64,000 nt of DNA, from the sequence record NC_049849.1; one strand, 5' to 3'. Both the position numbers and the translations under genes were made by a program. Under the pieces are notes generated by a model, which saw nothing but the letters and a program-made list of their open reading frames with translations, made no database searches and was not told where the DNA came from. Below, piece by piece: positions 25,112 through 46,239 of this stretch (the stretch's first letter is position 1; every line of letters begins with the position of its first letter).

Positions 25112-25142
25112 GCAACAGCAACGCAGCAACCAATAACAATCT

Positions 25143-25412
25143 GTGAGTAGCGCAATGAAGAAACCTGCCAATCCTTTCGCACACATCCCGCCGGTCAAGA
25201 AGTCGATTGATGATCCTTTCAAGAAAGACAACCGCGCAGTACGTGCACCCATCGCGGACAAAGATGATGGCGTGGCACTCAGCGAAATCTTTCTGACGTT
25301 TGCAGCCGAACGGCGGCGCATGGCAAAGGTTGGCGCGATCAGTGACGAGGCCTGCCTCCGCGATATCGAACGCGCAACGCAGATGCTCAACAAGCTCACT
25401 ACTCTTCTGTAA
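25143..25412 (+). CDS. hypothetical protein
   Basis: GTG start within TCTGTG; alternative ATG at 25155. Confidence 0.6.
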   Translation: MSSAMKKPANPFAHIPPVKKSIDDPFKKDNRAVRAPIADKDDGVALSEIFLTFAAERRRMAKVGAISDEACLRDIERATQMLNKLTTLL

Positions 25413-25418
25413 TCCATC

Positions 25419-25445
25419 GGGCCTACGGGCCCTTCTCTCTTTTCT
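25419..25445 (+). terminator. short hairpin with pyrimidine tract (weak terminator or processing site)
   Basis: GGGCC-TACG-GGCCC-TTCTCTCTTTT. Confidence 0.5.
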
Positions 25446-25466
25446 CTGTGGAGCATTTCAAATGTC
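25445..25466 (+). repeat. 22-nt direct repeat TCTGTGGAGCATTTCAAATGTC spanning RBS and start codon
   Basis: Identical copy at 35594-35615. Confidence 0.8.
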
Positions 25467-25896
25467 TATCAAGTCCAACTGCATCGAGCTGCAAACGTTG
25501 ATGAACGCGCAAGCGTATCTGCGCACGGGTGGCGAGCTTACCCAGTCGATGGAAGCGGAACTCACACCCTGCCTTCAAAAGATCGAAGGCGCGGTCGCTA
25601 TGTGGGAACGCATGGAAGGTGTTCACCCGGAAATGTCCGAACTGATCGCTGCTCTGGTCGACAACAAAGTTTGGGTCAGTTCTGCGAAGCCGGACGACGT
25701 TATGGTTATTTCGTTCGCCACGCTGCAGAACGTTGTTGCCAAGTTCGCGCAAGACCGCAACCCCGAGCATCGCGACCTCGGCTTCGACACCAAGATAGGC
25801 GGCGTGCCGTTGTCGGCCAAGAACTCTGTTGGCTACGCGCTGCGTGTCGCTAACAAGCTGATCGACGACGCGTACCAAGGCAACGAGCCGGGCTGA
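25462..25896 (+). CDS. hypothetical protein
   Basis: GGAG SD; start trimmed from ORF 25300. Confidence 0.65.
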   Translation: MSIKSNCIELQTLMNAQAYLRTGGELTQSMEAELTPCLQKIEGAVAMWERMEGVHPEMSELIAALVDNKVWVSSAKPDDVMVISFATLQNVVAKFAQDRNPEHRDLGFDTKIGGVPLSAKNSVGYALRVANKLIDDAYQGNEPG

Positions 25897-25900
25897 TAAT

Positions 25901-25909
25901 TCGTAAATA
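25901..25909 (+). promoter_or_regulatory. TCGTAAATA putative phage promoter
   Basis: Exact 9-mer just after a stop codon. Confidence 0.6.
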
Positions 25910-25977
25910 ACCGACAGGGAGCCAGCGTGCTCCCTACTCGCACATTCAAACGTTGTGCTTTCTGTGGAGCGTGTGCC

Positions 25978-26247
25978 ATGACGCAAATCTCTAGCGAGCT
26001 TGCGAACATCAAGCAGGTGTGGGTGAAGTTCAAAGAGGGCGACACTCTCGTTACCTTCATCGAGTATATCGGCCTTGACTACTACACGGCGGTTCCCTTG
26101 AACAGCGCGCCCACCATCTACGTGCATAAGAGCGGCGACCAGTGGGAAGCTGCGTGCTTTGATGGCCGGGATCAGCGAGCGGTGTCTAGTCTTATGGACA
26201 CTCCCGAAGAAGCGTTCAACCTGTTGGTCAACGAATACTGGAAATAA
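25978..26247 (+). CDS. hypothetical protein
   Basis: TCTGTGGAGC RBS upstream of ATG 25978. Confidence 0.6.
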   Translation: MTQISSELANIKQVWVKFKEGDTLVTFIEYIGLDYYTAVPLNSAPTIYVHKSGDQWEAACFDGRDQRAVSSLMDTPEEAFNLLVNEYWK

Positions 26248-26248
26248 A

Positions 26249-26551
26249 ATGAAGACCAAACGCAAGCTCAAGGTCGTGGTGCCCTGCAAGTTCAAACACC
26301 ACACGTACGAAGTAGAGTACGAGCGCTCGTACTGGAGTGGGAAGTTGCCGCAGTACTCAGCAACGGTGCAAGGCGAGTACGGCCACCTGTATCCTGTCAT
26401 CGTGGTGACCCAGCGCCTGGACGGATTCTTTGTCGGCTACGTTCAGCTTGGCGCAGATAACGGATACGTTACCGTCATCACGAATCCGAAGCTCACGGCT
26501 GCCGAAGCGTACGCGATCCTGGCCCGTGACTACTGGGAAAATCGCTACTGA
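26249..26551 (+). CDS. hypothetical protein
   Basis: Abuts the upstream stop; C-terminus resembles the preceding gene. Confidence 0.6.
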   Translation: MKTKRKLKVVVPCKFKHHTYEVEYERSYWSGKLPQYSATVQGEYGHLYPVIVVTQRLDGFFVGYVQLGADNGYVTVITNPKLTAAEAYAILARDYWENRY

Positions 26552-26585
26552 GCTAGCGCCACAATCAACAATACAAAGGACAAAC

Positions 26586-27059
26586 ATGGCACTCAATCGT
26601 TACCCCGACGACTTCTTTCCGTTCACTGTGACTGCCTCCGAAGGCCAGCAGCCTTGGCGTCGAGTGAAGGGCTTTGAGCAGTGGGTTCAGTCGAACAGAG
26701 AAGTCTTCAAAGAGAAGTACGGCCGTCAGGTATACACCTCGATGGATGGCAGGATCGGATATCACAAAGTCTGGTCGTACTATGAGGCCGACCTCGTTGT
26801 CACCAGCGCGACGACTGCAGTTGTGAAGTTCTATGGGCTGGGGCGTGATTGGGACTTCAGCGGCGACTCAAAGCGCGGCGATCTGCAAGAGCAAATCGAG
26901 ATTACGCTCGACGAGTTCGACTTTACCGAAGTGGTCGAACGTAAAGCCTGGCTGTACTCAGTCGAAGTGCAGCAAGCCCGCGAAGCCGAACGCAAGCGCA
27001 TTGCGCGAGTACGTGAAACCGACGCCATCCTTATCGAATTCTTTGGAAAGCAGCTGTAA
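26586..27059 (+). CDS. hypothetical protein
   Basis: AAAGGA SD after a CA-rich leader. Confidence 0.65.
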   Translation: MALNRYPDDFFPFTVTASEGQQPWRRVKGFEQWVQSNREVFKEKYGRQVYTSMDGRIGYHKVWSYYEADLVVTSATTAVVKFYGLGRDWDFSGDSKRGDLQEQIEITLDEFDFTEVVERKAWLYSVEVQQAREAERKRIARVRETDAILIEFFGKQL

Positions 27060-27223
27060 TGCAAACCCTGATCCGCAACATCAACCAGTTACTCCTCAAC
27101 ATCTTCATCATCGTACTGCTCGCAGTGGTCGTGGTCGCCAGCTTCCACCTGTGGGGATGGATGGGCGTGTTTATCTCCGCACTCGTGATCGCAATTCTGC
27201 TGGCCTTTGGCAGCGGCAAATAA
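27059..27223 (+). CDS. small two-TM membrane protein (54 aa, not in ORF track)
   Basis: Read by hand: MQTLIRNINQLLLNIFIIVLLAVVVVASFHLWGWMGVFISALVIAILLAFGSGK. Confidence 0.6.
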   Translation: MQTLIRNINQLLLNIFIIVLLAVVVVASFHLWGWMGVFISALVIAILLAFGSGK

Positions 27224-27234
27224 GGAATACTGCA

Positions 27235-29151
27235 ATGACTATCAAGTTCTCCGAACTCACCCTCGCTCAAAAGAAGACTCTGTACAAGAAAGCCTGCGAG
27301 TCGTACTACGCGGGCGAGAGCGGTCGTGGTCCCAAGCAGAGTACGGTGATGACCGATGCGCAGTTCGACCGGCTCGAAGACCTCATCAAGGCCGAGCAGC
27401 CGGACTGGGTTGGACTGAAGCGTACCAACACCAATGCCATCGGCAAGAAAGAGAAGGTGAAGCTGCCGCACTTCATGCCGTCGCTGAACAAGGCTTACCC
27501 GGAGCATGTGGAAGCGCGCAGCAAGCACCTGGAGGGCAACTCTGTTGTCATCATGGATAAGCTCGATGGCTCATCGATCTACGCGCAGTACAAGGGCAAC
27601 AAGTGCGTGAAGCTCATCACCCGCGGCGACGGGATCACCGGCAAGGATATCTCATTCTTGATTCCGCATTTGAATCTGCCGAAGATTCAAAACGACGGCG
27701 TGACTGCTTTCCGCATCGAAGCGCTGATGAAGAACTCGGTCTTCGCAAAGAAGTACGCGAAGCTGAAGGACAAGGACGGTGAGCCGCTGTACTCGAATCC
27801 GCGCAATCTGGTCGCTGGCATTCTGAATCGCAAGCTCGACCACAAGACGGACAAGGGCCAACTGCTGGATATCGACCTGGTCGTTCTCGGCGTGTTTGCA
27901 GAGCCGATCAAGTACGGCTTGGAGTGGGCACGCAAGGTCGGCCTGAGCACCGTTCAGTACTCGGTGATCAGCAAGAGCAAGGCGAAGGCAGAGCAGTTGT
28001 CGAAGCTGCTGGAAGCTCGACGCGCAAAGTCGGACTACGCAATGGATGGCTTGGTCGTCATCGGCTCCGAGCAAGTATTCAATTACGAGTCGTCCGACAA
28101 GCCGAAGTGGACGTGGGCATTCAAAGAGAACTTGACGGAAGACACCGCGCCGGATGCGTTGGTCAAGCGTATCATCTGGCAGCAGTCGCATTCGAACCGT
28201 TTGATCCCGAAGGTTGAAATCGAACCTGTAGAGATTGACGGCGTGACTATCAAGTTCGCCACGGTGCACAATGCGAAGTGGATGGTGGATCGTAAGATCG
28301 GCCCGGGTGCTGTAATCAAGATCGTTCGGTCGGGCGACGTGATTCCCAAGATCATCGCGGTGGTCAAGCCTGGCAAGCTGCAACTGCCGGATGTTGATTA
28401 CGTGACGAAGGGCGTGCACTTCGTCGCTACTGAAGCGACCACGGAGTCTTCTGCAAAGAAAATTGAGCGCTTCCTGAAGGCTGTTGGTATCGAAGGATGG
28501 AAGCAGTCTTCGATTGAGAAGCATTTGGAAACGATGGCGACGATTGACGACTACATCATCGTCGCAGGCATGGGCGCCAAGGATGCGGAGCGCGCACTGT
28601 TGGATATCGGAGTCGGCACTGCGGCCGCAAAGAAGTTGGCAGCAGAGTTGCAGAAGCTGAACGGCATATCTGTAATCAAGCTCATGGCCGGCTCGGGCAT
28701 CTTTGATGCAGGTGTGGGTGAGCGTCGTCTGACGGAACTGGCAAAGCACATCAAGGTGTCGAACTGGTTCAAGTACAGCCGCACTGAGTTTCAGCTGCGC
28801 ATCCTGGAAATTCAAGGCTTTGGTGAGGCACTGGCCAAAGAGATTGCCTGGGGCGTCCACAAGTTCCGAGTCTCTTACAACGAGTGGAAGTCCTATATTG
28901 ATATCAAGCTTCTCATCAAGACCGAGAAGAAAGCGAAGCCTACTTCGCTGGACTACCTTGGTGTCAAAGCATGCTGGACTGGCTACCGTGCGCCGGAGCA
29001 GGAAGCAGAAATCATCGCAGGTGGTGGCGAAGTCGTGTCGTTCACGGGCAAGACCACGCACTTGTTCTACAAAGAAGGTGGCAAGACTTCATCCAAGATC
29101 GCAAAGGCCGGTGACCGTGCCATGACCTGGGAACAATTCAAAGGACAATAA
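27235..29151 (+). CDS. ligA: NAD-dependent DNA ligase
   Basis: Ia domain (YY...MTDAQFDRL), MPSLNKA, adenylation motif KLDG, RGDG..GKDI, NPRN..AG, MDGLV, motif V AFK, OB fold (RSGDVIPKI), BRCT-like end; TAAGGA SD before ATG 27235. Confidence 0.92.
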   Translation: MTIKFSELTLAQKKTLYKKACESYYAGESGRGPKQSTVMTDAQFDRLEDLIKAEQPDWVGLKRTNTNAIGKKEKVKLPHFMPSLNKAYPEHVEARSKHLEGNSVVIMDKLDGSSIYAQYKGNKCVKLITRGDGITGKDISFLIPHLNLPKIQNDGVTAFRIEALMKNSVFAKKYAKLKDKDGEPLYSNPRNLVAGILNRKLDHKTDKGQLLDIDLVVLGVFAEPIKYGLEWARKVGLSTVQYSVISKSKAKAEQLSKLLEARRAKSDYAMDGLVVIGSEQVFNYESSDKPKWTWAFKENLTEDTAPDALVKRIIWQQSHSNRLIPKVEIEPVEIDGVTIKFATVHNAKWMVDRKIGPGAVIKIVRSGDVIPKIIAVVKPGKLQLPDVDYVTKGVHFVATEATTESSAKKIERFLKAVGIEGWKQSSIEKHLETMATIDDYIIVAGMGAKDAERALLDIGVGTAAAKKLAAELQKLNGISVIKLMAGSGIFDAGVGERRLTELAKHIKVSNWFKYSRTEFQLRILEIQGFGEALAKEIAWGVHKFRVSYNEWKSYIDIKLLIKTEKKAKPTSLDYLGVKACWTGYRAPEQEAEIIAGGGEVVSFTGKTTHLFYKEGGKTSSKIAKAGDRAMTWEQFKGQ

Positions 29152-29456
29152 TGATTCATGCAATCAACCCGTACGTCGGCGCTGAAAAGCTCGATGTAGA
29201 TTTCCCGCACGTCTCCAAAAGCGTGTGCCTGAAAATCCAGCGCGGCAACTTTACCATTTCGATTGTCGCGGACAACAGCCTCGGCACGATGGACAAGCTG
29301 CGCCGTACCAACCTGCGAGTCTTCTATGCGCAGCCCGACGAATCCGACCGCGCACTGGAAGTTACCGATAAGGTCTTCAACGGCGAAGACAACGTTGAAG
29401 GCACGTTTGACACTCTACAGTCGGCCATGTTTTGGATCGACGCGCAATCGCTGTAA
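29151..29456 (+). CDS. hypothetical protein
   Basis: TAATG coupling. Confidence 0.6.
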   Translation: MIHAINPYVGAEKLDVDFPHVSKSVCLKIQRGNFTISIVADNSLGTMDKLRRTNLRVFYAQPDESDRALEVTDKVFNGEDNVEGTFDTLQSAMFWIDAQSL

Positions 29457-29498
29457 GTCAACTCCATAGACAACTCACAACGCAAACAAGAAACTTCA

Positions 29499-30707
29499 AT
29501 GGCTAAAGTAAAAACTATCAACCCGAGCAAGTACGTACTCATGCCGTCTCAGCTCAAAGCGCCGGACGGCGCAGACCTCTTTCTCGTCAAGGCACTGCGC
29601 GACGGCCTGCATTTCAAGAAAGGCGACGTTGGTGGATACGTCAGCAGCAGCTACAACCTCATCCAGAAAGACGACTCCTGGGTCGGCCCCGGCGCTATGG
29701 TGTACGGTCATGCGATAGTGTCGGGCATTGCGCTGATCGCAGATAATGCTCGGGTCTTTGACCAGGCACGAGTTAACGGATACTCACAAGTCCGCGACTC
29801 CTCTGTGATTTGTGGAGAAGCCCGCGTAAGCGATACGTACGTCAATGGTACGGCTATGATTCGTGACGCATGCCTTCGTACCTGCAAGATATCCTCGAAG
29901 GTCAAGGTGACCGGCGGTTCTATCACTGAGAGCAGTCTTTATGACTCGGTGCAGGTCCACGGCTCGGGTCTGTATATCTCCAACTGCGAGCTGCAAGGAC
30001 ACACCCATGTCAGCGGTAGTCACGACTACGACGTTTACAATCTAACTGTGCGGGACGCGCGGATTGAATCCGCCGACGACTACATGGTGATTACGTCTAT
30101 CGGGTCAGAGCATGGAATACTCTACGCGTTCCGTAATTTGGAAGGCATCCTGATGGTCAATCGCGGATGCTTCGAGGATACCTTGGACCGGTTCCGTGAA
30201 AAGGTTGAGCGCGTTCACGGCAAAGTCAGGAAGCGTGAGAAAGTGGCTGCTGAGTATCGGCTGTTGATCCGACTGATGGAGCTGCGCTTCAGCCACCTGA
30301 AGCATTCAAAAGAGGCTGCGAAGCCGGGTAGGGCTGTTGCTGTCGAGCTGGAACCGAAGGTCGTCAGCCGTGCAGTCGCTCGCAACTTCTTTCTGCGCCA
30401 CCAGCTGTTGAGCAAGGTCTACGTGCAGCACGAAGTCTTGCGCCGCGCGGTGCAACGCGCGCAACGCGATGCGGCCAGTGGGCGCGGTCCGTACAATACT
30501 CTGTACCTGGCGCAACGCGACCTGCGGCAATACCTCGTGACCCATAAGGACGTGTTTGCGAACGACTCAGCAGCGTTTGCTGAGGTGTGGGGTGACTCGA
30601 CAAAGCGTCAGCAGTTGCTGGCGGCGTATGAAGCTCACAAAGAGCTGCGCGCAGCTGCGTCTGCCGATGACGCAGAGGACATCGAAGCAGGCTACGATCA
30701 CGCATAA
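29499..30707 (+). CDS. left-handed beta-helix (hexapeptide repeat) protein
   Basis: KKGDVGGYV...NL..DSWV followed by repeated A.V.G.A.V hexapeptides. Confidence 0.7.
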   Translation: MAKVKTINPSKYVLMPSQLKAPDGADLFLVKALRDGLHFKKGDVGGYVSSSYNLIQKDDSWVGPGAMVYGHAIVSGIALIADNARVFDQARVNGYSQVRDSSVICGEARVSDTYVNGTAMIRDACLRTCKISSKVKVTGGSITESSLYDSVQVHGSGLYISNCELQGHTHVSGSHDYDVYNLTVRDARIESADDYMVITSIGSEHGILYAFRNLEGILMVNRGCFEDTLDRFREKVERVHGKVRKREKVAAEYRLLIRLMELRFSHLKHSKEAAKPGRAVAVELEPKVVSRAVARNFFLRHQLLSKVYVQHEVLRRAVQRAQRDAASGRGPYNTLYLAQRDLRQYLVTHKDVFANDSAAFAEVWGDSTKRQQLLAAYEAHKELRAAASADDAEDIEAGYDHA

Positions 30708-30718
30708 GGAGTTTTGAA

Positions 30719-30943
30719 ATGAGAGAACGCCATTTTTGCTACGGCTGCAAGAAGCACTTGTACGAAGAACTATTTCCGACCGATACTGACTTCAAAGCAC
30801 AAGGTCGTAAATGCACTCGTTGCCGAGACAACATTGCGAACCGTACGCGTAACGCCGGTGCATCGCAAGCCACCCTCAAGCAAACCAAGAAGCGCTACGC
30901 CAGCGGCGAGTCCGACAAATTCTTTTCCAAGGTGAACGAGTAA
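30719..30943 (+). CDS. small zinc-finger protein
   Basis: CYGC...CTRC; TAAGGAG SD. Confidence 0.6.
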   Translation: MRERHFCYGCKKHLYEELFPTDTDFKAQGRKCTRCRDNIANRTRNAGASQATLKQTKKRYASGESDKFFSKVNE

Positions 30944-30944
30944 C

Positions 30945-31310
30945 ATGCAAAACAACATCGAGCAACGCCTGAACACTGACTTGGCCGACATGACTGCAGC
31001 CGAAGCAGTGGAGAAGCTGAAAGAAGAAACGGGGCTGAATATCATTCATGCCGACCAGGCCAATCCCGTGGTCATCGGCGCCGGAACCCTGGGCGTGGAT
31101 GAGTACATGCTGGGCACTGATCGTGACAACATGGTCCGGTCTCTGATGGCACTCGGCGCAGGTCCTGGCATCGTGTCCATGTTGAAGGACGAAGACTTCC
31201 AGGCCAAGGTCCGCGATCCTGAAACGGAAGAGTCCAAGCGTGCGCTGAGCGCTGCAGAAGCAAAGCGTCAACGCAAGGCCGAAAAGCTGAAGCGTCAGTT
31301 CTCCAAGTAA
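30945..31310 (+). CDS. hypothetical protein
   Basis: Packed ORF with a basic C-terminus. Confidence 0.6.
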   Translation: MQNNIEQRLNTDLADMTAAEAVEKLKEETGLNIIHADQANPVVIGAGTLGVDEYMLGTDRDNMVRSLMALGAGPGIVSMLKDEDFQAKVRDPETEESKRALSAAEAKRQRKAEKLKRQFSK

Positions 31311-31337
31311 TCACAACTCCGACAAAAGGATACACGC

Positions 31338-32255
31338 ATGAACTTCGCAAACTTGCCCAGCATGTTCACCAAGCTGCCGGCTTCGGTTAACCTCGACGAA
31401 GGCAACCCCATCGTGTTTGTCGTCAACGACCTTGGCCGCGACATTGACTCGGACGTTCGCGTCCACTCAGTTGGCACTAAGACCATGGCCGCGCTGATGG
31501 AAGCGATCCGCGCTTGGGAAGTCAACAGTGAAGTGCTGGTGATTCATCAGAACCAACTGAAGTGGATTTTGGGCAACCTCCCGCCTGATACGTGGGTCTA
31601 CTTTGGGGAACCGGTGGACAAGCCCACGCTGAAGACGTTGAACAGCACGAAGCGAGCCGCAGCCGAACCCAGTGATCATGTCGTGCTGATGCCGACGCCG
31701 CCGAGCGAAACCATCTATGCGCATTACTCCCGCATCAGTGATGCGTTGAGCGAACGGTACACTCGCGCTCTGGTCATCTGCAATCAAGACATGGTTGACC
31801 GAGCAAAACTCGCGGACCTGTGGACCATCGACAACAGCGAATCCGAAGACGACCGGGTGCTGTATATCACTATCGACCAGTTCAAGCGCGACCTGCTGCA
31901 CGTTGAAGCCACGGTCTTCTTTGACTACTACTGGGCCGATGAATGGAACCGTGTGTGCAAGATCGTCAACATTGCAGCCAAGCAGTGGTTCCAGCCTAAG
32001 CCCGCGCCGGCTGAGCTGCTGTCGTCGGATATCGACGTGTACAAAATGTCCACGGCCGAACGTCAGAAGCTCTTGCTGAAGTTGCAGGACTCCATGCAGC
32101 CTTGGACGTTCTACGACGTGGTGACGTTGGCGGATGAAGCAGACAGCGAGTACAAGAAGCCGGTCAAGATCGAAATGCTGGACACCGGCACGCACTACTC
32201 GGTGGTCGGCCACCATGTTGACCAACAAGGCAGCATCGTGCTGCACGTTGCGTAA
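31338..32255 (+). CDS. hypothetical protein (305 aa)
   Basis: AAAAGGA SD. Confidence 0.7.
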   Translation: MNFANLPSMFTKLPASVNLDEGNPIVFVVNDLGRDIDSDVRVHSVGTKTMAALMEAIRAWEVNSEVLVIHQNQLKWILGNLPPDTWVYFGEPVDKPTLKTLNSTKRAAAEPSDHVVLMPTPPSETIYAHYSRISDALSERYTRALVICNQDMVDRAKLADLWTIDNSESEDDRVLYITIDQFKRDLLHVEATVFFDYYWADEWNRVCKIVNIAAKQWFQPKPAPAELLSSDIDVYKMSTAERQKLLLKLQDSMQPWTFYDVVTLADEADSEYKKPVKIEMLDTGTHYSVVGHHVDQQGSIVLHVA

Positions 32256-32265
32256 GAGTATCTCC

Positions 32266-33215: not shown

Positions 33216-33219
33216 TTGC

Positions 33220-33334
33220 ACGGGGACTGCAGCGGTGTTGCGTAAAAACAACACCGGTCCGCGGTCACCGTTTTTGTGATATCATATCTATACGAGGCAC
33301 AGTCCGCCTCGGAGTCTGTGAATAGGAAAACGAT
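33220..33334 (+). promoter_or_regulatory. structured regulatory element, copy 2
   Basis: GACTGCAG CGGTGTTG CGTAAAAA CAACACCG GT CCGCGGTC then TGATATCATATCTA, CGAGGC/GCCTCG hairpin and GAATAGGAAAA; matches 24646. Confidence 0.75.
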
Positions 33335-33610
33335 ATGAGCAAGAAGCATCCGATCAACAACGGTCTGCCTGCCGGCCTGCATTTCTCCGATATCAAGATA
33401 GGCGACGAGTTGGTCATCGGTTGGAACGACGCTCCAGAGGAAAAGGTGATCGTGCTGGCGTCGCCCGGCCTACTCCATCCGAAGTCGTACAAAGGTGGTG
33501 TAACTATCCGGGTTATGTCTGACGCTGACAATCATCGAACCCTGCATAGCAGTATCGACGGAGCGCAAGTGATCGAACGTACCGGGCGCAACATCTTCCA
33601 GCTGCTGTAA
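33335..33610 (+). CDS. hypothetical protein, tandem paralogue A
   Basis: MSKK..NNGLP.G.HFS....G...YKG shared with the next gene. Confidence 0.7.
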   Translation: MSKKHPINNGLPAGLHFSDIKIGDELVIGWNDAPEEKVIVLASPGLLHPKSYKGGVTIRVMSDADNHRTLHSSIDGAQVIERTGRNIFQLL

Positions 33611-33623
33611 TCCCATCAAGACC

Positions 33624-33650
33624 CAGCCCTTCGGGGCTGTTTCCTTTTCT
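33624..33650 (+). terminator. cUUCGg hairpin with pyrimidine tract
   Basis: CAGCCC-TTCG-GGGCTG-TTTCCTTTT. Confidence 0.65.
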
Positions 33651-33672
33651 AATTTCTCTGTGAGACAACACC

Positions 33673-34047
33673 ATGAGCAAGAAGCAAACGCTGGTCAACA
33701 ACGGCCTGCCCGAAGGCGTACACTTTTCGGAAGTCGAAGTCGGGTCGGTCATGCGCGTGCTGTTCAAAGATAGCGAACCGCAGCACGTGCTGGTCATCCG
33801 GTCACGCGACGCGAATCGGCGGCCGACGTACAAAGGCTCGGTGTCATTTACAGGCGTGAACGGCGAGGGCGATATCATCACCTTCGACGGTGACCAGGTG
33901 CACGAATGGATCGGCACGCAGCCGCTGGCGCAACTGACGGCGGCAGACATTCTGATGAACGACACGCTGCAAGCTCAGCGTTATCCGCGTGGCACTGTTG
34001 TCCCTGACCAAGACAAGATCGACCCTGCATACGACCCAACGCTGTAA
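33673..34047 (+). CDS. hypothetical protein, tandem paralogue B
   Basis: Paralogue of 33335. Confidence 0.7.
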   Translation: MSKKQTLVNNGLPEGVHFSEVEVGSVMRVLFKDSEPQHVLVIRSRDANRRPTYKGSVSFTGVNGEGDIITFDGDQVHEWIGTQPLAQLTAADILMNDTLQAQRYPRGTVVPDQDKIDPAYDPTL

Positions 34048-34058
34048 CGAGCAAGACC

Positions 34059-34085
34059 CAGGCCTTCGGGCCTGTTCCCATTTCT
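34059..34085 (+). terminator. cUUCGg hairpin with pyrimidine tract
   Basis: CAGGCC-TTCG-GGCCTG-TTCCCATTT; same CAAGACCCAG prefix as 33617. Confidence 0.6.
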
Positions 34086-34101
34086 GCGTTCTAACTTTTC
34101 T

Positions 34102-34515
34102 GTGAGTCAACTAATGGATATCGTTGTTTGCATTCCCACCGCCGTACGTTTCGTCGTTGACGAAGAGCGTCATACCATCGCCGTCGTTAAGCGTGTGAAC
34201 GAGTGGATGACCCAATGGACTGTCCCGAACAACATCAAGGCGTATGTTGGCCCGGCACTCGGCGCGGGATGGATTCCCGAGGCAGCCGTTCGTGCATGGT
34301 CGGTTCGGTTCAATGCTGCGATGACGGCGGCCCTAGGCGCACCGTCTGCGTTCCTCTCGGCTTCGGACTTCGAGTTCACGGTTGCGGTCTCGCACCCTCA
34401 TGTGCATTCGACCGAGCGCCCTGTCGGCCTGGACCCGAACGTTGAAGGTATGATCTGGATCAACGGCGATTATGTGCGCCAGCTTCGTCTTTATGATCGG
34501 ATGGAAAACAACTGA
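34102..34515 (+). CDS. hypothetical protein
   Basis: GTG start within TCTGTG; alternative ATG at 34114. Confidence 0.6.
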   Translation: MSQLMDIVVCIPTAVRFVVDEERHTIAVVKRVNEWMTQWTVPNNIKAYVGPALGAGWIPEAAVRAWSVRFNAAMTAALGAPSAFLSASDFEFTVAVSHPHVHSTERPVGLDPNVEGMIWINGDYVRQLRLYDRMENN

Positions 34516-34997
34516 TGACTTTGCCGGACAAAGGTGATTTGGTTCGTGATCTGCGTGAGCGTGAAGCGCGGGAAGGCATCGTAGGCTTGACGGTTGATCT
34601 GCGGCCCGTCGCAGTTGAGACTACGGTGACCGTTGAATGGATGGACGGCTTTGGTGGTGAAATGTTCACGCTGAGCCAGCTTCGCAAGATCGCTGACCAT
34701 CACTGGGTGATCGACAAACACCCGGATACACAAGACTTCGTGATCTATGTAGGCGAGCTTCGGTTCGGTTACGTGTGGAGCTGGGATCATGAAGACCATA
34801 CCGCTTTCGTCTTTTGCGCAGACGACATACTCACTGCGCAACAAGCCTTCTTAGCGGCTGAAGAAGAATTCGCACAAGTTCCCGAGGACCCAGACCTCGA
34901 AGCGCAGTGGGTGTGCAAGCACCCGAACATGAAAGCGATCCCGTTTGACGATATGACATGGGATCATGAATGGCAACAATGGGTCGTGACGATCTAA
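34515..34997 (+). CDS. hypothetical protein
   Basis: TGATG coupling. Confidence 0.65.
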   Translation: MTLPDKGDLVRDLREREAREGIVGLTVDLRPVAVETTVTVEWMDGFGGEMFTLSQLRKIADHHWVIDKHPDTQDFVIYVGELRFGYVWSWDHEDHTAFVFCADDILTAQQAFLAAEEEFAQVPEDPDLEAQWVCKHPNMKAIPFDDMTWDHEWQQWVVTI

Positions 34998-35007
34998 AGG
35001 ACTATCT

Positions 35008-35355
35008 GTGAAAAGCAAACGTGATATCTCAATTCTGAACAAGCAGATGAACGACGTTGAGAAAGTGCTGCGGCTGCCCAAGCAGTTCAATCACTGGCTC
35101 AAGCAAGAAGGCTTGACTGAAGAGCGCTTCCGCGGTTTTCGTCGCGGTCACAATCACTACTGGAAGGGACGCGGCCGCTACTGGCGCATCAACTGCTTCG
35201 GCGTGTTCGAGTGCTCGGAGCGGTTCGATACGTTCGATCGCTGGGCGAACTCGAATCCCCAGGTCGGCGTCTCTATCGAATGGATGGCCAACCGTGCGCA
35301 ATTCCGCCGCGCGTTCTTGCAGATGCTGCGCGACGTGCGCGCCAAGGGGTTCTGA
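35008..35355 (+). CDS. hypothetical basic protein
   Basis: AAAGGA SD and TCTGTG start. Confidence 0.65.
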   Translation: MKSKRDISILNKQMNDVEKVLRLPKQFNHWLKQEGLTEERFRGFRRGHNHYWKGRGRYWRINCFGVFECSERFDTFDRWANSNPQVGVSIEWMANRAQFRRAFLQMLRDVRAKGF

Positions 35356-35356
35356 C

Positions 35357-35593
35357 GTGCCGCATTCCATTGTCTGCATTCCGGCGCCTCTGTTCCGCGA
35401 AGCACGTACCGAGCTGAAGGTCAAGCAACGCTTCGGACGTGAACTCATCGTCAACGATGACGGCGACCCACTGTGCGCAGGCGAAGCCTTGTTGGTTGAA
35501 GCAACACTCGAAGAAGTCGCAGCACAACATCCCAGCGCGTACTGGTGCATCAACCCGATGTGCGGTCCGTGGTATCCTGTCCCTACCCTCTAA
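35357..35593 (+). CDS. hypothetical protein
   Basis: GTG 1 nt after the upstream stop. Confidence 0.5.
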   Translation: MPHSIVCIPAPLFREARTELKVKQRFGRELIVNDDGDPLCAGEALLVEATLEEVAAQHPSAYWCINPMCGPWYPVPTL

Positions 35594-35615
35594 TCTGTGG
35601 AGCATTTCAAATGTC
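35594..35615 (+). repeat. 22-nt direct repeat (second copy of 25445-25466)
   Basis: TCTGTGGAGCATTTCAAATGTC. Confidence 0.8.
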
Positions 35616-36519
35616 ATCTATTCTGAGTCTGTTGAACGAAGTCGCCAAGCAAGCTGAAGAAACTGCCGAGAAGATCACCAGCACTGTCGAATCGATGAGC
35701 GAGGATATCAAGCACGAGTTCGTCGGCTCGCTCCTCAATCATGACACCGTGGCCGAGTACGAGCAGGAGTGCGGAGGCAAAGGCATTCTTAGCGATATCG
35801 AGTTGCTGATAAAATCCGCAAGCATGAATGCTGGGCGCAACAAGCTGCTGGAAGCCTTGGGCGACACGTCGATGAACTCGGACTTCCTGCAATTCGTCGC
35901 GGTCGCACAGGCGAACGGATTCGAGACGGTGAAGACCTTTACGTTCTGGCCCATCGACCGCGATACCGGTCTGGAAAAGACGGACAACGTTATGCGCCGC
36001 GAAGCGTTCCTGGTTATGGCCGATCCCAAGCGCAAGCTGATCCTGACAGTCGAGACTTACACTGTCTACTACGAAGTAGAGCAGCAGTACAAGGTCGGCG
36101 TGAATACGGCGAATCTGTATTTCGCGTGGAAGTCGAACAACGACAAGGCCTATCCGTTTCATTGCTCGGGCGGCTTCGAGTCTGCAAGCAATCCCGACTG
36201 GCGTAAGCACGCAGAAGAAAAGCAGCCCGACGACTTGGTCTTCTGCGGCTACAAAGATGTGCGCACCGGGCTGGTGTGGTCGATCAAGCACTTGGAGCGC
36301 ACGGGCACGTTTATGGATCATCCGCAAATCAAGCGCCCGGCGTTTGGCGGGTCGGTCTACGGTGTGAACTTCTACACCGACTACTATCATGCACGGCATC
36401 AGCGTGCCGATGGCAGGGGATTCGACTACTCGAAGTCGGATGAAGTATCGGCGATGCGCAAGGAGCGCATTGACACATTGCCGATCTGGTTCTTGAAGAT
36501 GGCTGGCTATTCCGTTTAA
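35611..36519 (+). CDS. hypothetical protein (302 aa)
   Basis: GGAG SD; start trimmed from ORF 35545. Confidence 0.75.
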   Translation: MSSILSLLNEVAKQAEETAEKITSTVESMSEDIKHEFVGSLLNHDTVAEYEQECGGKGILSDIELLIKSASMNAGRNKLLEALGDTSMNSDFLQFVAVAQANGFETVKTFTFWPIDRDTGLEKTDNVMRREAFLVMADPKRKLILTVETYTVYYEVEQQYKVGVNTANLYFAWKSNNDKAYPFHCSGGFESASNPDWRKHAEEKQPDDLVFCGYKDVRTGLVWSIKHLERTGTFMDHPQIKRPAFGGSVYGVNFYTDYYHARHQRADGRGFDYSKSDEVSAMRKERIDTLPIWFLKMAGYSV

Positions 36520-36535
36520 GAAGTGGAGATTTGGT

Positions 36536-36982
36536 ATGAGCAATAGCGTTCAATTCCAAGAAGTACGTAAGGCCGTTCTCGACATTGTTGAGAACGCACT
36601 GGACCTGGACCTGGATCAAGAGGCCGTAGCGGACGGTCTGACCCGCGTCGTGATCGGGCTTGCCAACTACCTGGCAGAGAAAGAAGACAAGCAGCCGATG
36701 ATGATGCGGTTCAGTGTCGATGCAGTGCGTTCGATGTACACCGGGCATTCGAGCTCTGACAAGATTGATGACGAGGAGTTCATCGTTGGCGAACTGTTGC
36801 CCGAAGTAGTCGCCGACCTGTACGGGCTGCGCATCATCGAGAATCCGCACTTCAGCAACGAGTTGTTCCTCATCAACTTCCCGGCCTACATGGTGACGCG
36901 CAAGCGGGTGTGGAGCGCTGAAGGGAAGTGGCTGCGCAAGTTCTCGGACGAGCGTACGGCGCCTGGATTTTTCCAGCCTTGA
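36536..36982 (+). CDS. hypothetical protein
   Basis: GGAG SD. Confidence 0.65.
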   Translation: MSNSVQFQEVRKAVLDIVENALDLDLDQEAVADGLTRVVIGLANYLAEKEDKQPMMMRFSVDAVRSMYTGHSSSDKIDDEEFIVGELLPEVVADLYGLRIIENPHFSNELFLINFPAYMVTRKRVWSAEGKWLRKFSDERTAPGFFQP

Positions 36983-36987
36983 ACGAT

Positions 36988-36996
36988 TCGTAAATA
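36988..36996 (+). promoter_or_regulatory. TCGTAAATA putative phage promoter
   Basis: Exact 9-mer after a stop codon, followed by two TCTGTG motifs. Confidence 0.6.
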
Positions 36997-37022
36997 ATCT
37001 GTGATTCTCTAAGGAGTACTCT

Positions 37023-37634
37023 GTGAGTTACCGACTTAATCAATATGCAAAGCGGTTGCCTGTGCAAAAGCAAGTGATCGACCGCTGGCTTTCTGAGCAT
37101 GCTGATGTTGCTCAATGGTTGGCATCCACCAACTCGGAATTCGCTGTAAGCCTTCGGGCGCAACTTAACAGCCGTGGCTATCTGTCCGACAATCAAATCA
37201 TCGCGGTGCGCAATGCGGTGAATCGTTCTGTTGAGCGTGTCGCTGCTGCACCCCAAGTCGATATGGGTTTGGTTGAGCAAGCGTTCGCGACCGCGAAGAA
37301 CAACGGCATCAAGCAGCCCAAGATGAACCTGGGTGAGGTCAAGCTCAGCGCAGCGCCGGCTTCGGGCAGGAACCCCAACGCGGTGTACGTGAAGTCCGTC
37401 GATAACGTATACCTGGGCAAGATCGTCGGCGGTAAGCTGTTCGCAACGCCGGAGTGCACAGCAGAGCAGCAGCAGTATCTGCAAGAGGTGGTGCGCGATC
37501 CTGTCGCCGCTGCAAAAGCTTTCGGACAACGCACGGGTATCTGCTGCATTTGCAGCCGTACTCTTACCAACGGCGAGTCGATTGAACTGGGCATCGGTCC
37601 AATCTGCGCCGGCAACATGGGATGGGCAATGTAA
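37023..37634 (+). CDS. DUF6011-type zinc-finger protein
   Basis: C-terminal CCICSRTLTNGESIELGIGPIC signature; TAAGGAG SD. Confidence 0.75.
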   Translation: MSYRLNQYAKRLPVQKQVIDRWLSEHADVAQWLASTNSEFAVSLRAQLNSRGYLSDNQIIAVRNAVNRSVERVAAAPQVDMGLVEQAFATAKNNGIKQPKMNLGEVKLSAAPASGRNPNAVYVKSVDNVYLGKIVGGKLFATPECTAEQQQYLQEVVRDPVAAAKAFGQRTGICCICSRTLTNGESIELGIGPICAGNMGWAM

Positions 37635-37873
37635 TGGCACTGATACAACACCGCGACGGCATGGGTCGCGTTACCGGCGGGACCGATGACACCTTCAACT
37701 ACGAAGACATGGACCCCCAAATGCTTGGATACATGCGCGACTACATTGCGCGCAATCTCAGCGTCAGCGTTTCCAATTACGGCTACGGCAACCGCATCGA
37801 CCTGCGCGTTCATGTAGTGCTAGAAAACGTCGTCATCAGTCAAGACGCCCTCGAGTTCACGGTAGGAGAGTAG
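37634..37873 (+). CDS. hypothetical protein
   Basis: TAATG coupling. Confidence 0.55.
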   Translation: MALIQHRDGMGRVTGGTDDTFNYEDMDPQMLGYMRDYIARNLSVSVSNYGYGNRIDLRVHVVLENVVISQDALEFTVGE

Positions 37874-37874
37874 A

Positions 37875-38285
37875 GTGATTTTTCTTAACACCTGCGAGTA
37901 CGATAAGGCGCTGGCATTGGCAACTGCATTGACCGGAGTATCCGGCTGGGAAGAAGTCGGGTCTGGCAACGACGGTACAGCCCACGGCATAGAAATGTAC
38001 ACGGAGCTAGAAGTAGAGTTGTCCAGCTCCGCCGTCGCAGCAATGCTGCTGGAAATCGAAAAGAACTTCAAGTCCGCGTTCTGGAAGCCGACCAAGCATT
38101 TCGAGTTTGCGGATGACGACGCGCCCACGCTCCTGGCGTACAAAGCCATCGGCGCCTGGTCCAAGAACAATGCCAAGCGCGTTGAGATTTCGATCTTCAA
38201 TGACGGCACGCTCGCAACGGTGAATCTGTTTTTCGTGCATGGCTACACGTTCGAGCAAATCAAACGGCTGGACAAAGACGAGTAA
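37875..38285 (+). CDS. hypothetical protein
   Basis: TAGGAG SD; GTG start. Confidence 0.6.
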   Translation: MIFLNTCEYDKALALATALTGVSGWEEVGSGNDGTAHGIEMYTELEVELSSSAVAAMLLEIEKNFKSAFWKPTKHFEFADDDAPTLLAYKAIGAWSKNNAKRVEISIFNDGTLATVNLFFVHGYTFEQIKRLDKDE

Positions 38286-38290
38286 ACGAA

Positions 38291-38821
38291 ATGGACATTA
38301 AAAAATTGCGTGAGAAAGAGCAGCGGCTGGAGCGTCTGACCAATTGGGTAGACGCGTTCACCAGCTACTGCGACAAGGACGCCAACGAGTGGCCGGTCAA
38401 GGCCTGGTTGGATACGTACCAAATGGCTAACGTCGATACGCTGGTCGCTACGCGTGAGCAGTCGCAGGCTGTGGGATTCATGGCATCGGTTGTGCACTCG
38501 CGTGCCACGCAGTGGGGCCTGACTCTTTCGGTCGGCGCGGCAATGACCATCGTGTCGGTGTCGCAGACTCCGGGCATCGCAGTGATGCTGCTCGCAGTCA
38601 TCAAGCACCACGCGGTTTGCAACGTCGGCCAGGACTTCATCACTGCGGAGTTCATCTTCAACGTTATGCCGAACGCACCGACGCCAAACAACCTGGCTAT
38701 AGCGTGGGACGCACAGAAGACGAAGGACGGTAATCTGCTGGATCAGCTTGGGCCAGATGACTTCATCATGACGGCCGAAGAAACGAAGCAGCTGGACGAC
38801 TTGTTTGGGGAATCGCCATGA
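38291..38821 (+). CDS. hypothetical protein with hydrophobic hairpin
   Basis: Central hydrophobic stretch GLTLSVGAAMTIVSV...IAVMLLAVI. Confidence 0.6.
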   Translation: MDIKKLREKEQRLERLTNWVDAFTSYCDKDANEWPVKAWLDTYQMANVDTLVATREQSQAVGFMASVVHSRATQWGLTLSVGAAMTIVSVSQTPGIAVMLLAVIKHHAVCNVGQDFITAEFIFNVMPNAPTPNNLAIAWDAQKTKDGNLLDQLGPDDFIMTAEETKQLDDLFGESP

Positions 38822-39066
38822 TTGAAGAATCAAAGCCAAACAAAATCGGATTCTTTCGTTCGCTAGCTCGTGAACTCGGCTGGTCGCTCCTGAGCTGGAG
38901 CAGCAATATCAAGCCGGACTCGAGCGTCATGGTAATGATGAACGAAGGTCGGGAAGTCTTGCGCATCGTTCTTTCCGGCACGCCTGAAGCGCGGCGGAAG
39001 TTCCGTCATTACTTCTCGCATCAAAACACCAGCCCTATGGAGCAGGCAGATGAAGGCAAAGAATAA
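38818..39066 (+). CDS. hypothetical protein
   Basis: ATGA overlap. Confidence 0.5.
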   Translation: MIEESKPNKIGFFRSLARELGWSLLSWSSNIKPDSSVMVMMNEGREVLRIVLSGTPEARRKFRHYFSHQNTSPMEQADEGKE

Positions 39067-39403
39067 AAAGCAAGACAAAGAGTTCGCGGTTCTCGTTCAG
39101 TGGGGTGGGTACTGGGATGGCGCCATCAACACCGTAGCATACGAAGTCGTGAAGCTCAATCCTAAGACCATCGTGTACCGCGATTCTTTCGACAACAAGA
39201 CGATGGCGCGGGAATCTGTGATTCACAAGTGGTTCACGGACAAAGAAGAACTGCAGCTCTTCGTTCGCAAGAAGGCAGCCGAAATCAAGAAAGAACTGCG
39301 CGAGTGCATCAAGCGCACCGAGCAAGCTTTGCGTGAAGTCAACTCGGGCAAGATGCCCGTGATCGAACAGCAACAAATACACAAAGGCCCTTTCAAGCTA
39401 TGA
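39050..39403 (+). CDS. hypothetical protein
   Basis: GGAG SD. Confidence 0.6.
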   Translation: MKAKNKKQDKEFAVLVQWGGYWDGAINTVAYEVVKLNPKTIVYRDSFDNKTMARESVIHKWFTDKEELQLFVRKKAAEIKKELRECIKRTEQALREVNSGKMPVIEQQQIHKGPFKL

Positions 39404-39813
39404 CCGCAAACAACGAGTTCACTGTCGCTGCCGTTGCTGACGCACCGAAGTACGTGACGAACAAAAATGGTCACCTCATCAATGCCGACGGCAGGCCGTT
39501 GACTCAAGAAGACAAGTGGGCCATCATGGCTACTCTGAAGCCGGAGTATCTGCGTGAGAAGCGTAAGGCTGTGGCGGCAAAGATGGACCCGCAGGAGCTG
39601 GCGCTCATCGGCGTGCGAGCAGACGGCTCTGCGGTCAACCCGCAAGGCAGTGTTTCGATCAACGAGTACGAATCGGACTGGGGCGTTCGCGTTGATGAAT
39701 ACATCAAGTTCGACTTCTACGGGGATGCGTTGACGTACGCCAATCGGTACAACGAATTCTTCGACAACTCCAAGTCGCCTAGCTGGCGCATGTGGGCAGT
39801 TGCAAACAAGTAA
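39400..39813 (+). CDS. hypothetical protein
   Basis: ATGA overlap. Confidence 0.6.
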   Translation: MTANNEFTVAAVADAPKYVTNKNGHLINADGRPLTQEDKWAIMATLKPEYLREKRKAVAAKMDPQELALIGVRADGSAVNPQGSVSINEYESDWGVRVDEYIKFDFYGDALTYANRYNEFFDNSKSPSWRMWAVANK

Positions 39814-39825
39814 CCAAGGAACTCT

Positions 39826-40281
39826 GTGATGACTCCGATTGAAACTCTGAAAAGCGCGCTCGAAATTCTGCGTGACCCCAAGCATCATACCGATGTTTTC
39901 TATGCGGCAGACAAGCATGGTAACGTGACTGACCCTTTCGATCCGTCGGCTTGCAGCTTCTGCATGTTCGGCGCGATGGTTAAGGCCGCCGAGTTCAACT
40001 ACAACGAGACCGATGACCATAGGCCGTCGTGGCGACACCGCGATATCATGGCCAAGATCGTGGAGCGGTTCTCTGAAGAAATTAAGCTGCTGGTCCCGCA
40101 CTTGGACCTGGACTTGATCCGCAGCAGCTCGGAGTTCAAGCTCAAGCAAGAGCTTGGCAAGACTGAAGACCCGGCGGATTTCGCGCCGTTCCACAAGATC
40201 ACGCACTTCAGCGACTACGCGGGCCACTCGGCAGTCGTCGCCGCATTCGAGGCAGCTATCGCGGCTGCCGAAACCAAATAA
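39826..40281 (+). CDS. hypothetical protein
   Basis: AAGGA SD and TCTGTGATG start. Confidence 0.65.
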   Translation: MMTPIETLKSALEILRDPKHHTDVFYAADKHGNVTDPFDPSACSFCMFGAMVKAAEFNYNETDDHRPSWRHRDIMAKIVERFSEEIKLLVPHLDLDLIRSSSEFKLKQELGKTEDPADFAPFHKITHFSDYAGHSAVVAAFEAAIAAAETK

Positions 40282-40305
40282 GCAAACAACGAAAACAAGG
40301 AATCT

Positions 40306-41154
40306 GTGATGAATCACAACGAATTCGCCGGCAAGTACAATCTGCCCAAATGGCCGCAGATGCTGGTGTGGGGTACGCCGGTATCCATCGAGCAAGCGCA
40401 GGATGTGATTTTCCGTACCGATAAGTTCCTGCATCGCCTGTCGGATATCTACGGCGGCAACAACCAGAAGTACAACGAAGCGGTGCACCGCGAACTCGGA
40501 TATGATCGTGTCAAAAAGGCCTTTAAAGGTCTGCAGCAAAAGCACGGTGTCCACAGTAACTGGTCTGTCGACTACGAACTTGAACAGTGGGCCGAAGAGC
40601 TGATCGAAGAAGCTCTCGGCGTAGTCTATACCGTGTACGTCAAAAACGACTGGACCAGCTGCGCGTTCATCTACGGCGGCCATGGTTGGCTGCACCCCGA
40701 TGGCAACATCGGATACTTCGACAACATCGGCAAGTATCCCACGTACGAAGAAGTGTTCAATGACTGGTCGAAGATCGCAGCAGCGTTTCCGTATCTGGAC
40801 CTGAAGGTTACGCTCATGAGCGGCGAGTCTTGCGAACCCAGCAAGCCGGTGTTCACTCTGGTAATGTCGAACGGCCAGCTGGTGACCGCGGCAGAGACGA
40901 TGATGCCAACGCGAGATTCGGTCATCGAGTATCTGGCATGGCAGCGCTCGGATGATCGCTACATGGTAGAGGCAGTGTCGAATCGTTCGAGTGAGAATAA
41001 GCTGCCTTGGTCGTGGGTGCAAGTTCTCGGCAAGAAGCTCCACCCCGTGGTCGATCAAATCATCAGGAACGCAGAAGTCAAACTGCTTCTGATTCTGCAA
41101 GAGCGTGAAGAGCGCGCACAAGCGTTCAGCCAACCCCAACAAAACGAGGAATAA
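40306..41154 (+). CDS. hypothetical protein (282 aa)
   Basis: AAGGA SD and TCTGTGATG start. Confidence 0.75.
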   Translation: MMNHNEFAGKYNLPKWPQMLVWGTPVSIEQAQDVIFRTDKFLHRLSDIYGGNNQKYNEAVHRELGYDRVKKAFKGLQQKHGVHSNWSVDYELEQWAEELIEEALGVVYTVYVKNDWTSCAFIYGGHGWLHPDGNIGYFDNIGKYPTYEEVFNDWSKIAAAFPYLDLKVTLMSGESCEPSKPVFTLVMSNGQLVTAAETMMPTRDSVIEYLAWQRSDDRYMVEAVSNRSSENKLPWSWVQVLGKKLHPVVDQIIRNAEVKLLLILQEREERAQAFSQPQQNEE

Positions 41155-41157
41155 GAA

Positions 41158-41844: not shown

Positions 41845-41845
41845 A

Positions 41846-46220: not shown

Positions 46221-46239
46221 TGTCTATGGAGCGTGTGAC

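Follow-up and report, generated by a model that had tools for sequence, protein, structure and literature searches.

A TCTGTG label at the translation-initiation regions of two early gene arrays in the jumbo phage Motura

Why should a single hexamer, TCTGTG, recur at the starts of genes in two neighbouring arrays and almost nowhere else at gene starts in the same phage genome? The question is raised by a stretch of 64,000 nucleotides (nt) from Achromobacter phage Motura, comprising bases 62001–126000 of the 221,431-bp genome (MN094788). This whole stretch is referred to here as the window, and coordinates are those of the window unless marked 'genome'. Motura is a jumbo myovirus of the genus Moturavirus, with Ralstonia phage RSL1, Burkholderia phage BCSR5 and the PaBG/Lu11 group as distant kin (PMC7412058). 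The arrays occupy window 25.0–40.4 kb (genome 87.0–102.4 kb), a region in which every gene lies on the + strand. Gene starts were called by a codon-usage gene caller, and the calls match the GenBank annotation in this region except for a few start choices. As a label at the translation starts of two early ORFan operons, TCTGTG is real, highly non-random and lineage-specific; what reads it, if anything, is weighed below.

Enrichment at gene starts

An earlier note, made from the sequence alone, had listed twelve TCTGTG sites at gene starts in the arrays, and all twelve are present where it placed them. The window holds 21 copies of the hexamer, 18 of them on the + strand, and the nine copies that had not been listed are inside genes. 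Of the 50 copies in the complete genome, 40 are on the + strand and 10 on the − strand. Thirteen precede a sense-strand start by 3–25 nt, namely the twelve sites and one at genome 34160, outside the window.

Confinement of the motif to the arrays was borne out by the genome-wide count. Scored within −30 to +6 of the start codon, the hexamer occurs at 11 of 31 starts in the arrays region and at only 1 of the 304 outside it (Fisher p = 7.6e-12). Where an intergenic gap of at least 10 nt precedes the start, the motif is carried by 11 of 17 starts in the two array units and by 1 of 122 elsewhere; starts that overlap or abut the upstream gene or are coupled to it are devoid of the motif. The enrichment test against shuffled start windows that the note had proposed gave 12 windows with the motif, against 1.6 expected and a maximum of 6. 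Once hexamers related to the Shine–Dalgarno sequence, the start codon and stop codons are set aside, TCTGTG is the most enriched hexamer at starts. Chance or base composition as its source is ruled out by this ranking and by the enrichment statistics.

The hexamer is scarce elsewhere, as had been supposed, and the cause is trivial. The 21 copies in the window compare with 44 expected from dinucleotide shuffling, and shuffles of synonymous codons give 27.6 ± 4.8 in-gene copies in the sense orientation (20 observed) and 21.2 ± 4.3 in the antisense orientation (14 observed). Codon usage accounts for the deficit, and genome-wide avoidance of TCTGTG was therefore rejected. The in-gene deficit on the − strand (10 copies against 25 expected) was not used, because it lies within the spread of all hexamers for the same null model (standard deviation of z, 2.4; 404th lowest of 3963).

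Anatomy of the motif

The 13 sites share the consensus W-N-TCTGTG-R, with 1.83 bits at each of the six core positions and approximately 0 bits in the other flanks. Every site has a purine at +7 (10 A and 3 G), and at −2 every site has A or T. All 13 sites are in the sense orientation and lie within −25 to +3 of a start codon, where they overlap the Shine–Dalgarno sequence, the spacer or the start codon itself. They hug the starts even where the intergenic region is 43–131 nt long; under uniform placement in these regions the chance of this is about 1e-3, by our arithmetic from the intergenic lengths. Variants of TCTGTG with one mismatch occur at gene starts at background level, and a longer degenerate motif was ruled out on this ground and because the flanks hold no information. 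The sites in the window are as follows.

25140–25146, + strand: TCTGTGA, 15 nt before ATG 25155; GTG in frame, without an upstream Shine–Dalgarno sequence
25445–25466, + strand: TCTGTGGAG start region, copy 1 of a 22-nt identical repeat; ATG at 25462
25961–25967, + strand: TCTGTGG(AG), 17 nt before ATG 25978 and 52 nt downstream of the start of CGTAAATA
33315–33321, + strand: TCTGTGA in a cassette leader at about +27, after the 5′ stem-loop; 20 nt before ATG 33335
33657–33663, + strand: TCTGTGA(G), 16 nt before ATG 33673
34099–34105, + strand: TCTGTGA(G), 15 nt before ATG 34114; GTG in frame
35005–35011, + strand: TCTGTGA, its GTG being the start codon (35008); AAAGGA 6 nt upstream of the GTG
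35594–35615, + strand: copy 2 of the 22-nt identical start region; ATG 35611; the TAA of the upstream gene abuts the motif
36998–37004, + strand: TCTGTGA, first of a tandem pair 22 nt apart
37020–37026, + strand: TCTGTGA, its GTG being the start codon (37023); AAGGAG 6 nt upstream of the GTG
39823–39829, + strand: TCTGTG-ATG, the motif forming the spacer between AAGGAA and ATG 39829
40303–40309, + strand: TCTGTG-ATG, the motif forming the spacer between AAGGAA and ATG 40309

Three layouts can be distinguished. At six sites the motif runs into the Shine–Dalgarno sequence (TCTGTG-GAG or TCTGTG-AG), followed by 7–8 nt and the ATG. At three sites, including both promoter-cassette leaders, it lies further upstream of an AGGA-type Shine–Dalgarno sequence. 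In the third layout it lies downstream of AAGGA(G/A) and either contains the GTG start (35008 and 37023) or fills the spacer before the ATG (39829 and 40309). The GTG of the motif had been taken for the start codon of six genes; it is in frame in six, and is needed as the start only at 35008 and 37023. At 25155, 34114, 39829 and 40309 an in-frame ATG follows one to four codons downstream of the motif GTG. The ATGs at 39829 and 40309 are better spaced than the GTG from the upstream AAGGAA, and no Shine–Dalgarno sequence precedes the motif GTG at 25155 and 34114.

No secondary structure common to the RNA around the motif was consistent across the sites, where the mean unpaired probability of the motif is 0.20–0.65, and an Rfam scan of 22–44 kb returned no family. 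The sites often follow a small GC hairpin with a TTCG loop and a pyrimidine tract.

A candidate operator on the mRNA

Constant orientation, confinement to the last 25 nt before the start, three layouts within the footprint of the 30S subunit and sharp motif edges together point to a signal that is read on the mRNA. Sharp edges combined with background levels of one-mismatch variants argue for specific recognition, and not for the gradual decay of a copied sequence. The three layouts, with the motif before the Shine–Dalgarno sequence, in the spacer or containing the GTG start, have in common that the initiation site would be occluded by anything bound to the motif. Start regions homologous to the marked ones occur outside the arrays with their flanks kept and the exact hexamer missing (TCTATG at 46223, and TCTGAA and TCCGTCG in two cassette leaders), which fits a constraint that applies to the marked gene set alone.

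On these grounds we tentatively take UCUGUGR to be an RNA-level operator in the ribosome-binding window that is read by a Motura-specific repressor or nuclease, a reading that we rate as quite possible without calling it probable. UCUGUGR would be a cis-acting mark inside the window that the 30S subunit must occupy, and it would label those cistrons of the two early operons that must start translation independently, the coupled genes between them being without it. A Motura-specific factor, most likely a protein, would recognize the single-stranded heptamer and block or destroy the initiation site, so that the whole gene set would be turned off together. We infer each part of this scheme, namely reading on RNA, the existence of a trans-acting factor and the direction of its effect. 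The factor could be a translational repressor, which is somewhat more likely, or a sequence-specific endoribonuclease; that it would represent a previously unknown family of sequence-specific RNA-binding repressors or nucleases is a further proposition, which we regard as doubtful. The slight preference for a repressor comes from the 20 sense copies that persist inside genes, late genes included, and it is weak because sequence context can protect sites from RegB.

Several findings weigh against an RNA-level operator. A nuclease that cut every UCUGUG should lead middle and late genes to avoid the hexamer, and the in-gene sense copies that remain include some in the terminase and tail-fibre genes. 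Homology searches of the Motura genome found no RegB, RegA, CsrA, PemK/MazF, S1 or S21; a single sub-threshold match to CsrA (E = 0.02) falls in a non-coding antisense frame. Some sites are copied or duplicated (33657 with 34099, 39823 with 40303, 25445 with 35594, and the cassette leaders), which reduces the independent origins from 13 to approximately 6–8. The other two early units have ordinary AAGGA-type sites, except for one leader site. In the closest relatives, at loci that hold a ligase 33–42% identical to that of Motura, there are no arrays and no motif at starts. Finally, a search of sequencing runs for Motura returned one Motura DNA run and a soil metagenome and no RNA runs. The earlier note had proposed a mark read at the RNA level by a RegA-like repressor or a RegB-like endoribonuclease: the strand, position, sharp edges and leaders favour reading on RNA, and neither the RegA nor the RegB family is encoded.

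T4, with RegA and RegB, is the one phage in which the post-transcriptional silencing of early genes is well understood. Motura is a jumbo phage of a different lineage with an exact label on a subset of its early ORFan genes and no homologues of these T4 proteins. Reading of the label by a phage factor would delimit a small gene set, point to those of about 30 unknown early genes that are co-regulated and make UCUGUGAG a bait for a new sequence-specific RNA-binding protein or RNase.

Copying of start regions

The most serious rival holds that one family of ribosome-binding modules has spread locally with TCTGTG as its shared core, maintained by recent copying or gene conversion and read by nothing. 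The early regions of Motura would then be built of reusable terminator hairpins, promoter cassettes and ribosome-binding sites that recombine in the way of the PeSL cassettes of T4-like phages. The 22-nt start region at 25445–25466 and 35594–35615, which the earlier note had described as identical in front of unrelated genes, is indeed so, and related pairs of regions exist at 33617–33657 and 34052–34092 (83% identity) and at 39802–39835 and 40282–40315 (74%). The paralogous genes at 33335 and 33673 carry the motif at the same place, two of four promoter cassettes carry it in homologous leaders, and other pairs of unrelated genes share start regions of 16–18 nt, those at genome 34492 and 34825 being one such pair. 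A range limited to 15 kb agrees with local copying, and the motif is absent from relatives. The hairpins and the homologous region concerned are the following.

25419–25432, + strand: terminator-like GC hairpin and pyrimidine tract, immediately 5′ of the 25445 site
33624–33639, + strand: GC hairpin with TTCG loop and pyrimidine tract, upstream of the 33657 site
34059–34074, + strand: paralogous GC hairpin, in the module 83% identical to 33617–33657
46223–46243, + strand: start region outside the arrays, homologous to that of 25961; TCTATG (one mismatch), then an identical GGAGCGTGTG

Copying by itself is nevertheless somewhat unlikely as the full explanation. Conservation ends exactly at the hexamer plus R, with unrelated flanks across groups of sites, and the three layouts relative to the Shine–Dalgarno sequence and the start are not explained by one ancestral module. 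In homologous copies outside the arrays it is the hexamer that has diverged and the flanks that have been retained. Even 6–8 independent groups exceed the expectation for these windows, which is well below one. The suggestion of a relic of cassette shuffling is supported in part, by the several related pairs of sites and by start regions shared before unrelated genes elsewhere in Motura. Copying of modules and retention of the hexamer where it is needed may both be at work together. Should the motif prove to be a recombination module, the modular shuffling proposed for T4 would take in ribosome-binding sites as well, and in a phage group unrelated to T4.

Paralogy of the downstream genes was ruled out as the source of the motif, as the marked genes include one paralogous pair (33335 and 33673) and one further weak link.

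Start regions identical over 16–18 nt precede pairs of genes whose proteins show no detectable similarity at genome 34492/34825, 143585/143836, 56996/59513 and 62138/63536 (window 138 and 1536). Some hairpin modules are shared as well, and AGCCCTTCGGGGCT recurs in the 55.8-kb and 95.3-kb units. Judged by these repeats, the early regions seem to draw repeatedly on the same start-region and hairpin modules.

Promoter-like elements and a possible transcription-level signal

Each array is headed by a 78-nt repeat, the duplicated hairpin element that had been noticed ahead of the arrays. A long terminator hairpin comes first, followed by TGATATCAT, which matches an extended −10 element almost perfectly, and by a short leader that has a stem-loop at its 5′ end. 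The promoter-like features of the arrays are listed here.

24646–24723, + strand: cassette of terminator hairpin and extended −10 element, array 1; TGATATCAT at 24703–24711
25902–25909, + strand: CGTAAATA promoter-like motif of a conserved class; the 25961 site is in the leader it would produce
33220–33297, + strand: cassette of terminator hairpin and extended −10 element, array 2; TGATATCAT at 33277–33285
36989–36996, + strand: CGTAAATA promoter-like motif, 1 nt upstream of the first tandem TCTGTG

Genome-wide there are four such hairpin–promoter cassettes (genome 34124, 55771, 86703 and 95277), all of which carry TGATA(T/A)(C/A)AT after the long hairpin. TCTGTG is present in two of the four leaders; the others read TCTGAA and TCCGTCG, the latter in the array 1 cassette at the place where the paralogous cassette reads TCTGTG. 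The other 11 of the 13 sites are outside cassettes, mostly between cistrons far from any cassette.

Two further promoter-like classes were observed. The motif (A)ATCGTAAATA has 37 genomic copies, 35 on the + strand (window 1476, 9059, 12872, 18787, 25902, 36989 and 45519). Most copies precede a gene start by 16–160 nt or fall within the 3′ end of the gene upstream. The motif recurs in distant relatives at 6–7 copies per 21.8 kb, all on the gene strand, is reminiscent of the T4 late TATAAATA and, from its distribution, looks like a conserved promoter of this phage group. The motif AATTTCATA has 10 genomic copies located before structural-gene operons (window 54607 and 61754, − strand) and likely represents a late promoter class. 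TCTGTG is separate from the cassette, CGTAAATA and AATTTCATA classes and sits downstream of promoters, in leaders or between cistrons.

Pfam profile searches of the Motura genome gave no match to the beta subunit of multisubunit RNA polymerases (PF00562) or to sigma region 2; the single-subunit polymerase (PF00940) gave none either, a weak result because its control matched nowhere. With no phage RNA polymerase and no Pfam-detectable sigma factor found, Motura should depend on the host polymerase. The gene at genome 24291–25253, outside the window, is annotated as 'DNA-directed RNA polymerase subunit alpha' and has no Pfam match at E ≤ 0.01, so that the annotation is unsupported here.

A 121-residue protein encoded at 42036–42401 (+ strand) comprises an NrdR-type zinc ribbon (PF22811, E = 7e-9) and a basic proline-rich linker, and has no ATP-cone. 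Its gene lies about 1.7 kb downstream of the last motif site and was found by tblastn only in Motura among the phage records. Canonical NrdR boxes are absent from Motura, and the protein might thus act on host nrd operators; its only ties to the motif are proximity and a nucleic-acid-binding fold.

These features bear on the possibility that TCTGTG is a transcription-level signal, whether a fourth class of promoter or initiator, a polymerase pause or the operator of a DNA repressor, for which the zinc-ribbon protein would be the candidate. Its orientation is fixed relative to transcription, the 36998 site follows CGTAAATA by 1 nt with a second copy 22 bp further on (about two helical turns), and the Motura-only zinc-ribbon gene is just downstream of array 2. 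NrdR boxes, moreover, end in TGTGT. As a −10 element, however, TCTGTG would yield leaderless or truncated mRNAs, with loss of the Shine–Dalgarno sequence, in 10 of 13 cases: transcripts would begin 2–4 nt ahead of the ATG in six of them and within the coding frame in four. The CGTAAATA and AATTTCATA classes, unlike TCTGTG, have promoter-like spacing, and the three other promoter-like classes already cover the transcription units in a phage for which no polymerase or sigma factor of its own was found. A DNA operator need not hug start codons, and neither a palindrome or second half-site at the motif nor a canonical NrdR box was detected. A transcription-level signal is accordingly improbable. 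In particular, a consensus polymerase pause was rejected for want of G enrichment at −10/−11, and palindromes of the CRP, LexA or NrdR type were rejected for want of second half-sites.

Weaker alternatives

A translation enhancer or standby element acting on the ribosome, by pairing with rRNA or through S1, could offset a weak GAG-type Shine–Dalgarno sequence. Three sites have only GAG in this role, right after the motif, and several follow long unstructured pyrimidine tracts. The position of the motif is variable, however, and at four sites it forms the spacer or start codon downstream of a good AAGGA(G/A); a general enhancer should also not be confined to two operons. We consider such an element very unlikely.

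Slightly less probable again is a set of small-RNA target sites at initiation regions, paired by a phage or host RNA with the seed UCACAGA. The window of −25 to +3 and conservation limited to the heptamer are typical of seed targets, and either purine at +7 can pair with U. Against this, CACAGA is missing from every phage intergenic region and tRNA, Rfam yielded nothing in the region scanned, and all 13 sites are exact, although seed targets usually tolerate wobble or end mismatches. An antisense small RNA of the phage was rejected, since the sole TCTGTG that appeared to be neither genic nor at a start (genome 138468) falls inside an annotated gene.

Least probable of all, and very improbable, is the idea that the arrays are integron-like platforms in which TCTGTGR would be the crossover core where promoterless ORFan cassettes are inserted behind an early promoter by a phage enzyme of the tyrosine-recombinase/topoisomerase IB fold. 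The gene for one such enzyme, a topoisomerase IB that belongs to the catalytic superfamily of the tyrosine recombinases, lies 3.6 kb beyond the last site. If true, the idea would give a lytic jumbo phage a site-specific system for gene capture.

Marked genes, relatives and neighbouring proteins

The marked genes are small ORFans, for which the only Pfam families are DUF6011 and DUF6197, together with a few PHROGs of unknown function. The DUF6011 protein encoded at 37023–37634 (+ strand) has a match to phrog_4046 that begins only at profile position 97 of 301. The N-terminal third of the family is thus missing, and the motif-bearing start may be a point of truncation or fusion. A gene of the polynucleotide-kinase type is located directly upstream of array 2.

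Relatives are few. A word search of 5.8 billion clusters with a 302-residue ORFan product returned the query itself and no homologue, and neither a relative of this ORFan nor the 20-nt start region was present in IMG/VR. Megablast against 50,697 phage records and exact-protein look-ups returned only Motura, the first gene of array 1 had no usable match in the protein atlas, and a host-directed scan with homospermidine synthase gave no match. A 2023 soil metagenome run contains short contigs 88–100% identical to 34529–39199, indicative of a close Motura relative in soil. Their divergence is mosaic, with 0 differences in 295 nt, 26 in 407 nt and 7 in 60 nt. The soil fragments span the tandem sites at 36998 and 37020, which are unchanged, at low coverage and with a divergence too small to be informative.

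Other features of the genome

Several hexamers are nearly absent from the genome, namely GACGTC (3 copies, 61 expected), GATGTC (2), GACATC (2), GGATCC (0), AGATCT (0) and GAGATC (0); GATC (942) and GATATC (114) are not depleted. The pattern suggests avoidance of several restriction sites (RGATCY and GACRTC). Motura carries genes for 7-deazaguanine DNA modification (PMC7824862).

At 39223–41979 (− strand) a stop-free frame of 918 residues runs antisense to five + strand genes and the intergenic regions between them. It is most likely a shadow frame, given its negative codon-usage score (−0.12 per codon, against +0.18 to +0.32 for sense genes) and the lack of a PHROG match.

Comparison with known systems

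Five known systems resemble the marked arrays in part. The PeSL elements are promoter–terminator cassettes of T4-like phages (PMC2839356, PMC4122927). Similar to these, the four Motura cassettes combine a terminator stem-loop with an early sigma-70-type promoter in ORFan-rich regions, and smaller modules of hairpin and ribosome-binding site are reused before unrelated genes. However, TCTGTG lies outside the hairpin–promoter unit, and only two of the four leaders carry it.

Integron arrays (core GTTRRRY) likewise consist of a promoter followed by promoterless ORFan units, each with a 7-nt sequence near its start. In contrast to these, Motura shows no sign of an integron integrase or of imperfect palindromes of the attC kind with an inverse core; inverse repeats of the CACAGA type beside the sites are only partial and occur at 33315 and 25961. 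The Motura hairpins have short GC stems closed by TTCG loops, as RNA terminators typically do. The target sets of bacterial small RNAs share with the marked genes a conserved heptamer at −25 to +3 of otherwise unrelated mRNAs, but no gene for a complementary RNA was found in the phage.

The remaining two, RegB and RegA, are post-transcriptional regulators of T4 that both target early mRNAs where translation begins (PMC3014915). RegB, which works with T4 polynucleotide kinase, targets GGAG in early Shine–Dalgarno sequences with the aid of S1, and the RegA operators of T4 and RB69 overlap the AUG or sit just 5′ of it, are unstructured and compete with the 30S subunit (PMC3014915). The RegB system and the Motura label both involve a short motif in intergenic initiation regions of early mRNAs, with copies inside genes tolerated; in Motura all 13 sites precede starts by 3–25 nt, in units headed by cassettes of early-type promoters. 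The T4 kinase that cooperates with RegB has a parallel in the kinase-type gene adjoining array 2. The differences are that a six-frame search of the Motura genome gave no match to RegB (PF10715) at E ≤ 1, that the motif is UCUGUGR and not GGAG, which adjoins only 3 of 13 sites, and that the sites are without an A-rich 3′ context such as GGAGRAYARAA. With RegA the likeness is in placement, as the Motura motif overlaps or directly precedes the start (−25 to +3) and has no consistent fold. Unlike the RegA sites, which are A+U-rich and degenerate and include the AUG, it is an exact G/U-rich heptamer at a variable distance, and the Motura genome has no RegA (PF01818) match at E ≤ 1. As no homologue of either protein was found, 'RegA-like' and 'RegB-like' are to be understood as modes of action and not as families. 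The TCTGTG mark most likely works in the manner of the T4 post-transcriptional regulons without belonging to them.

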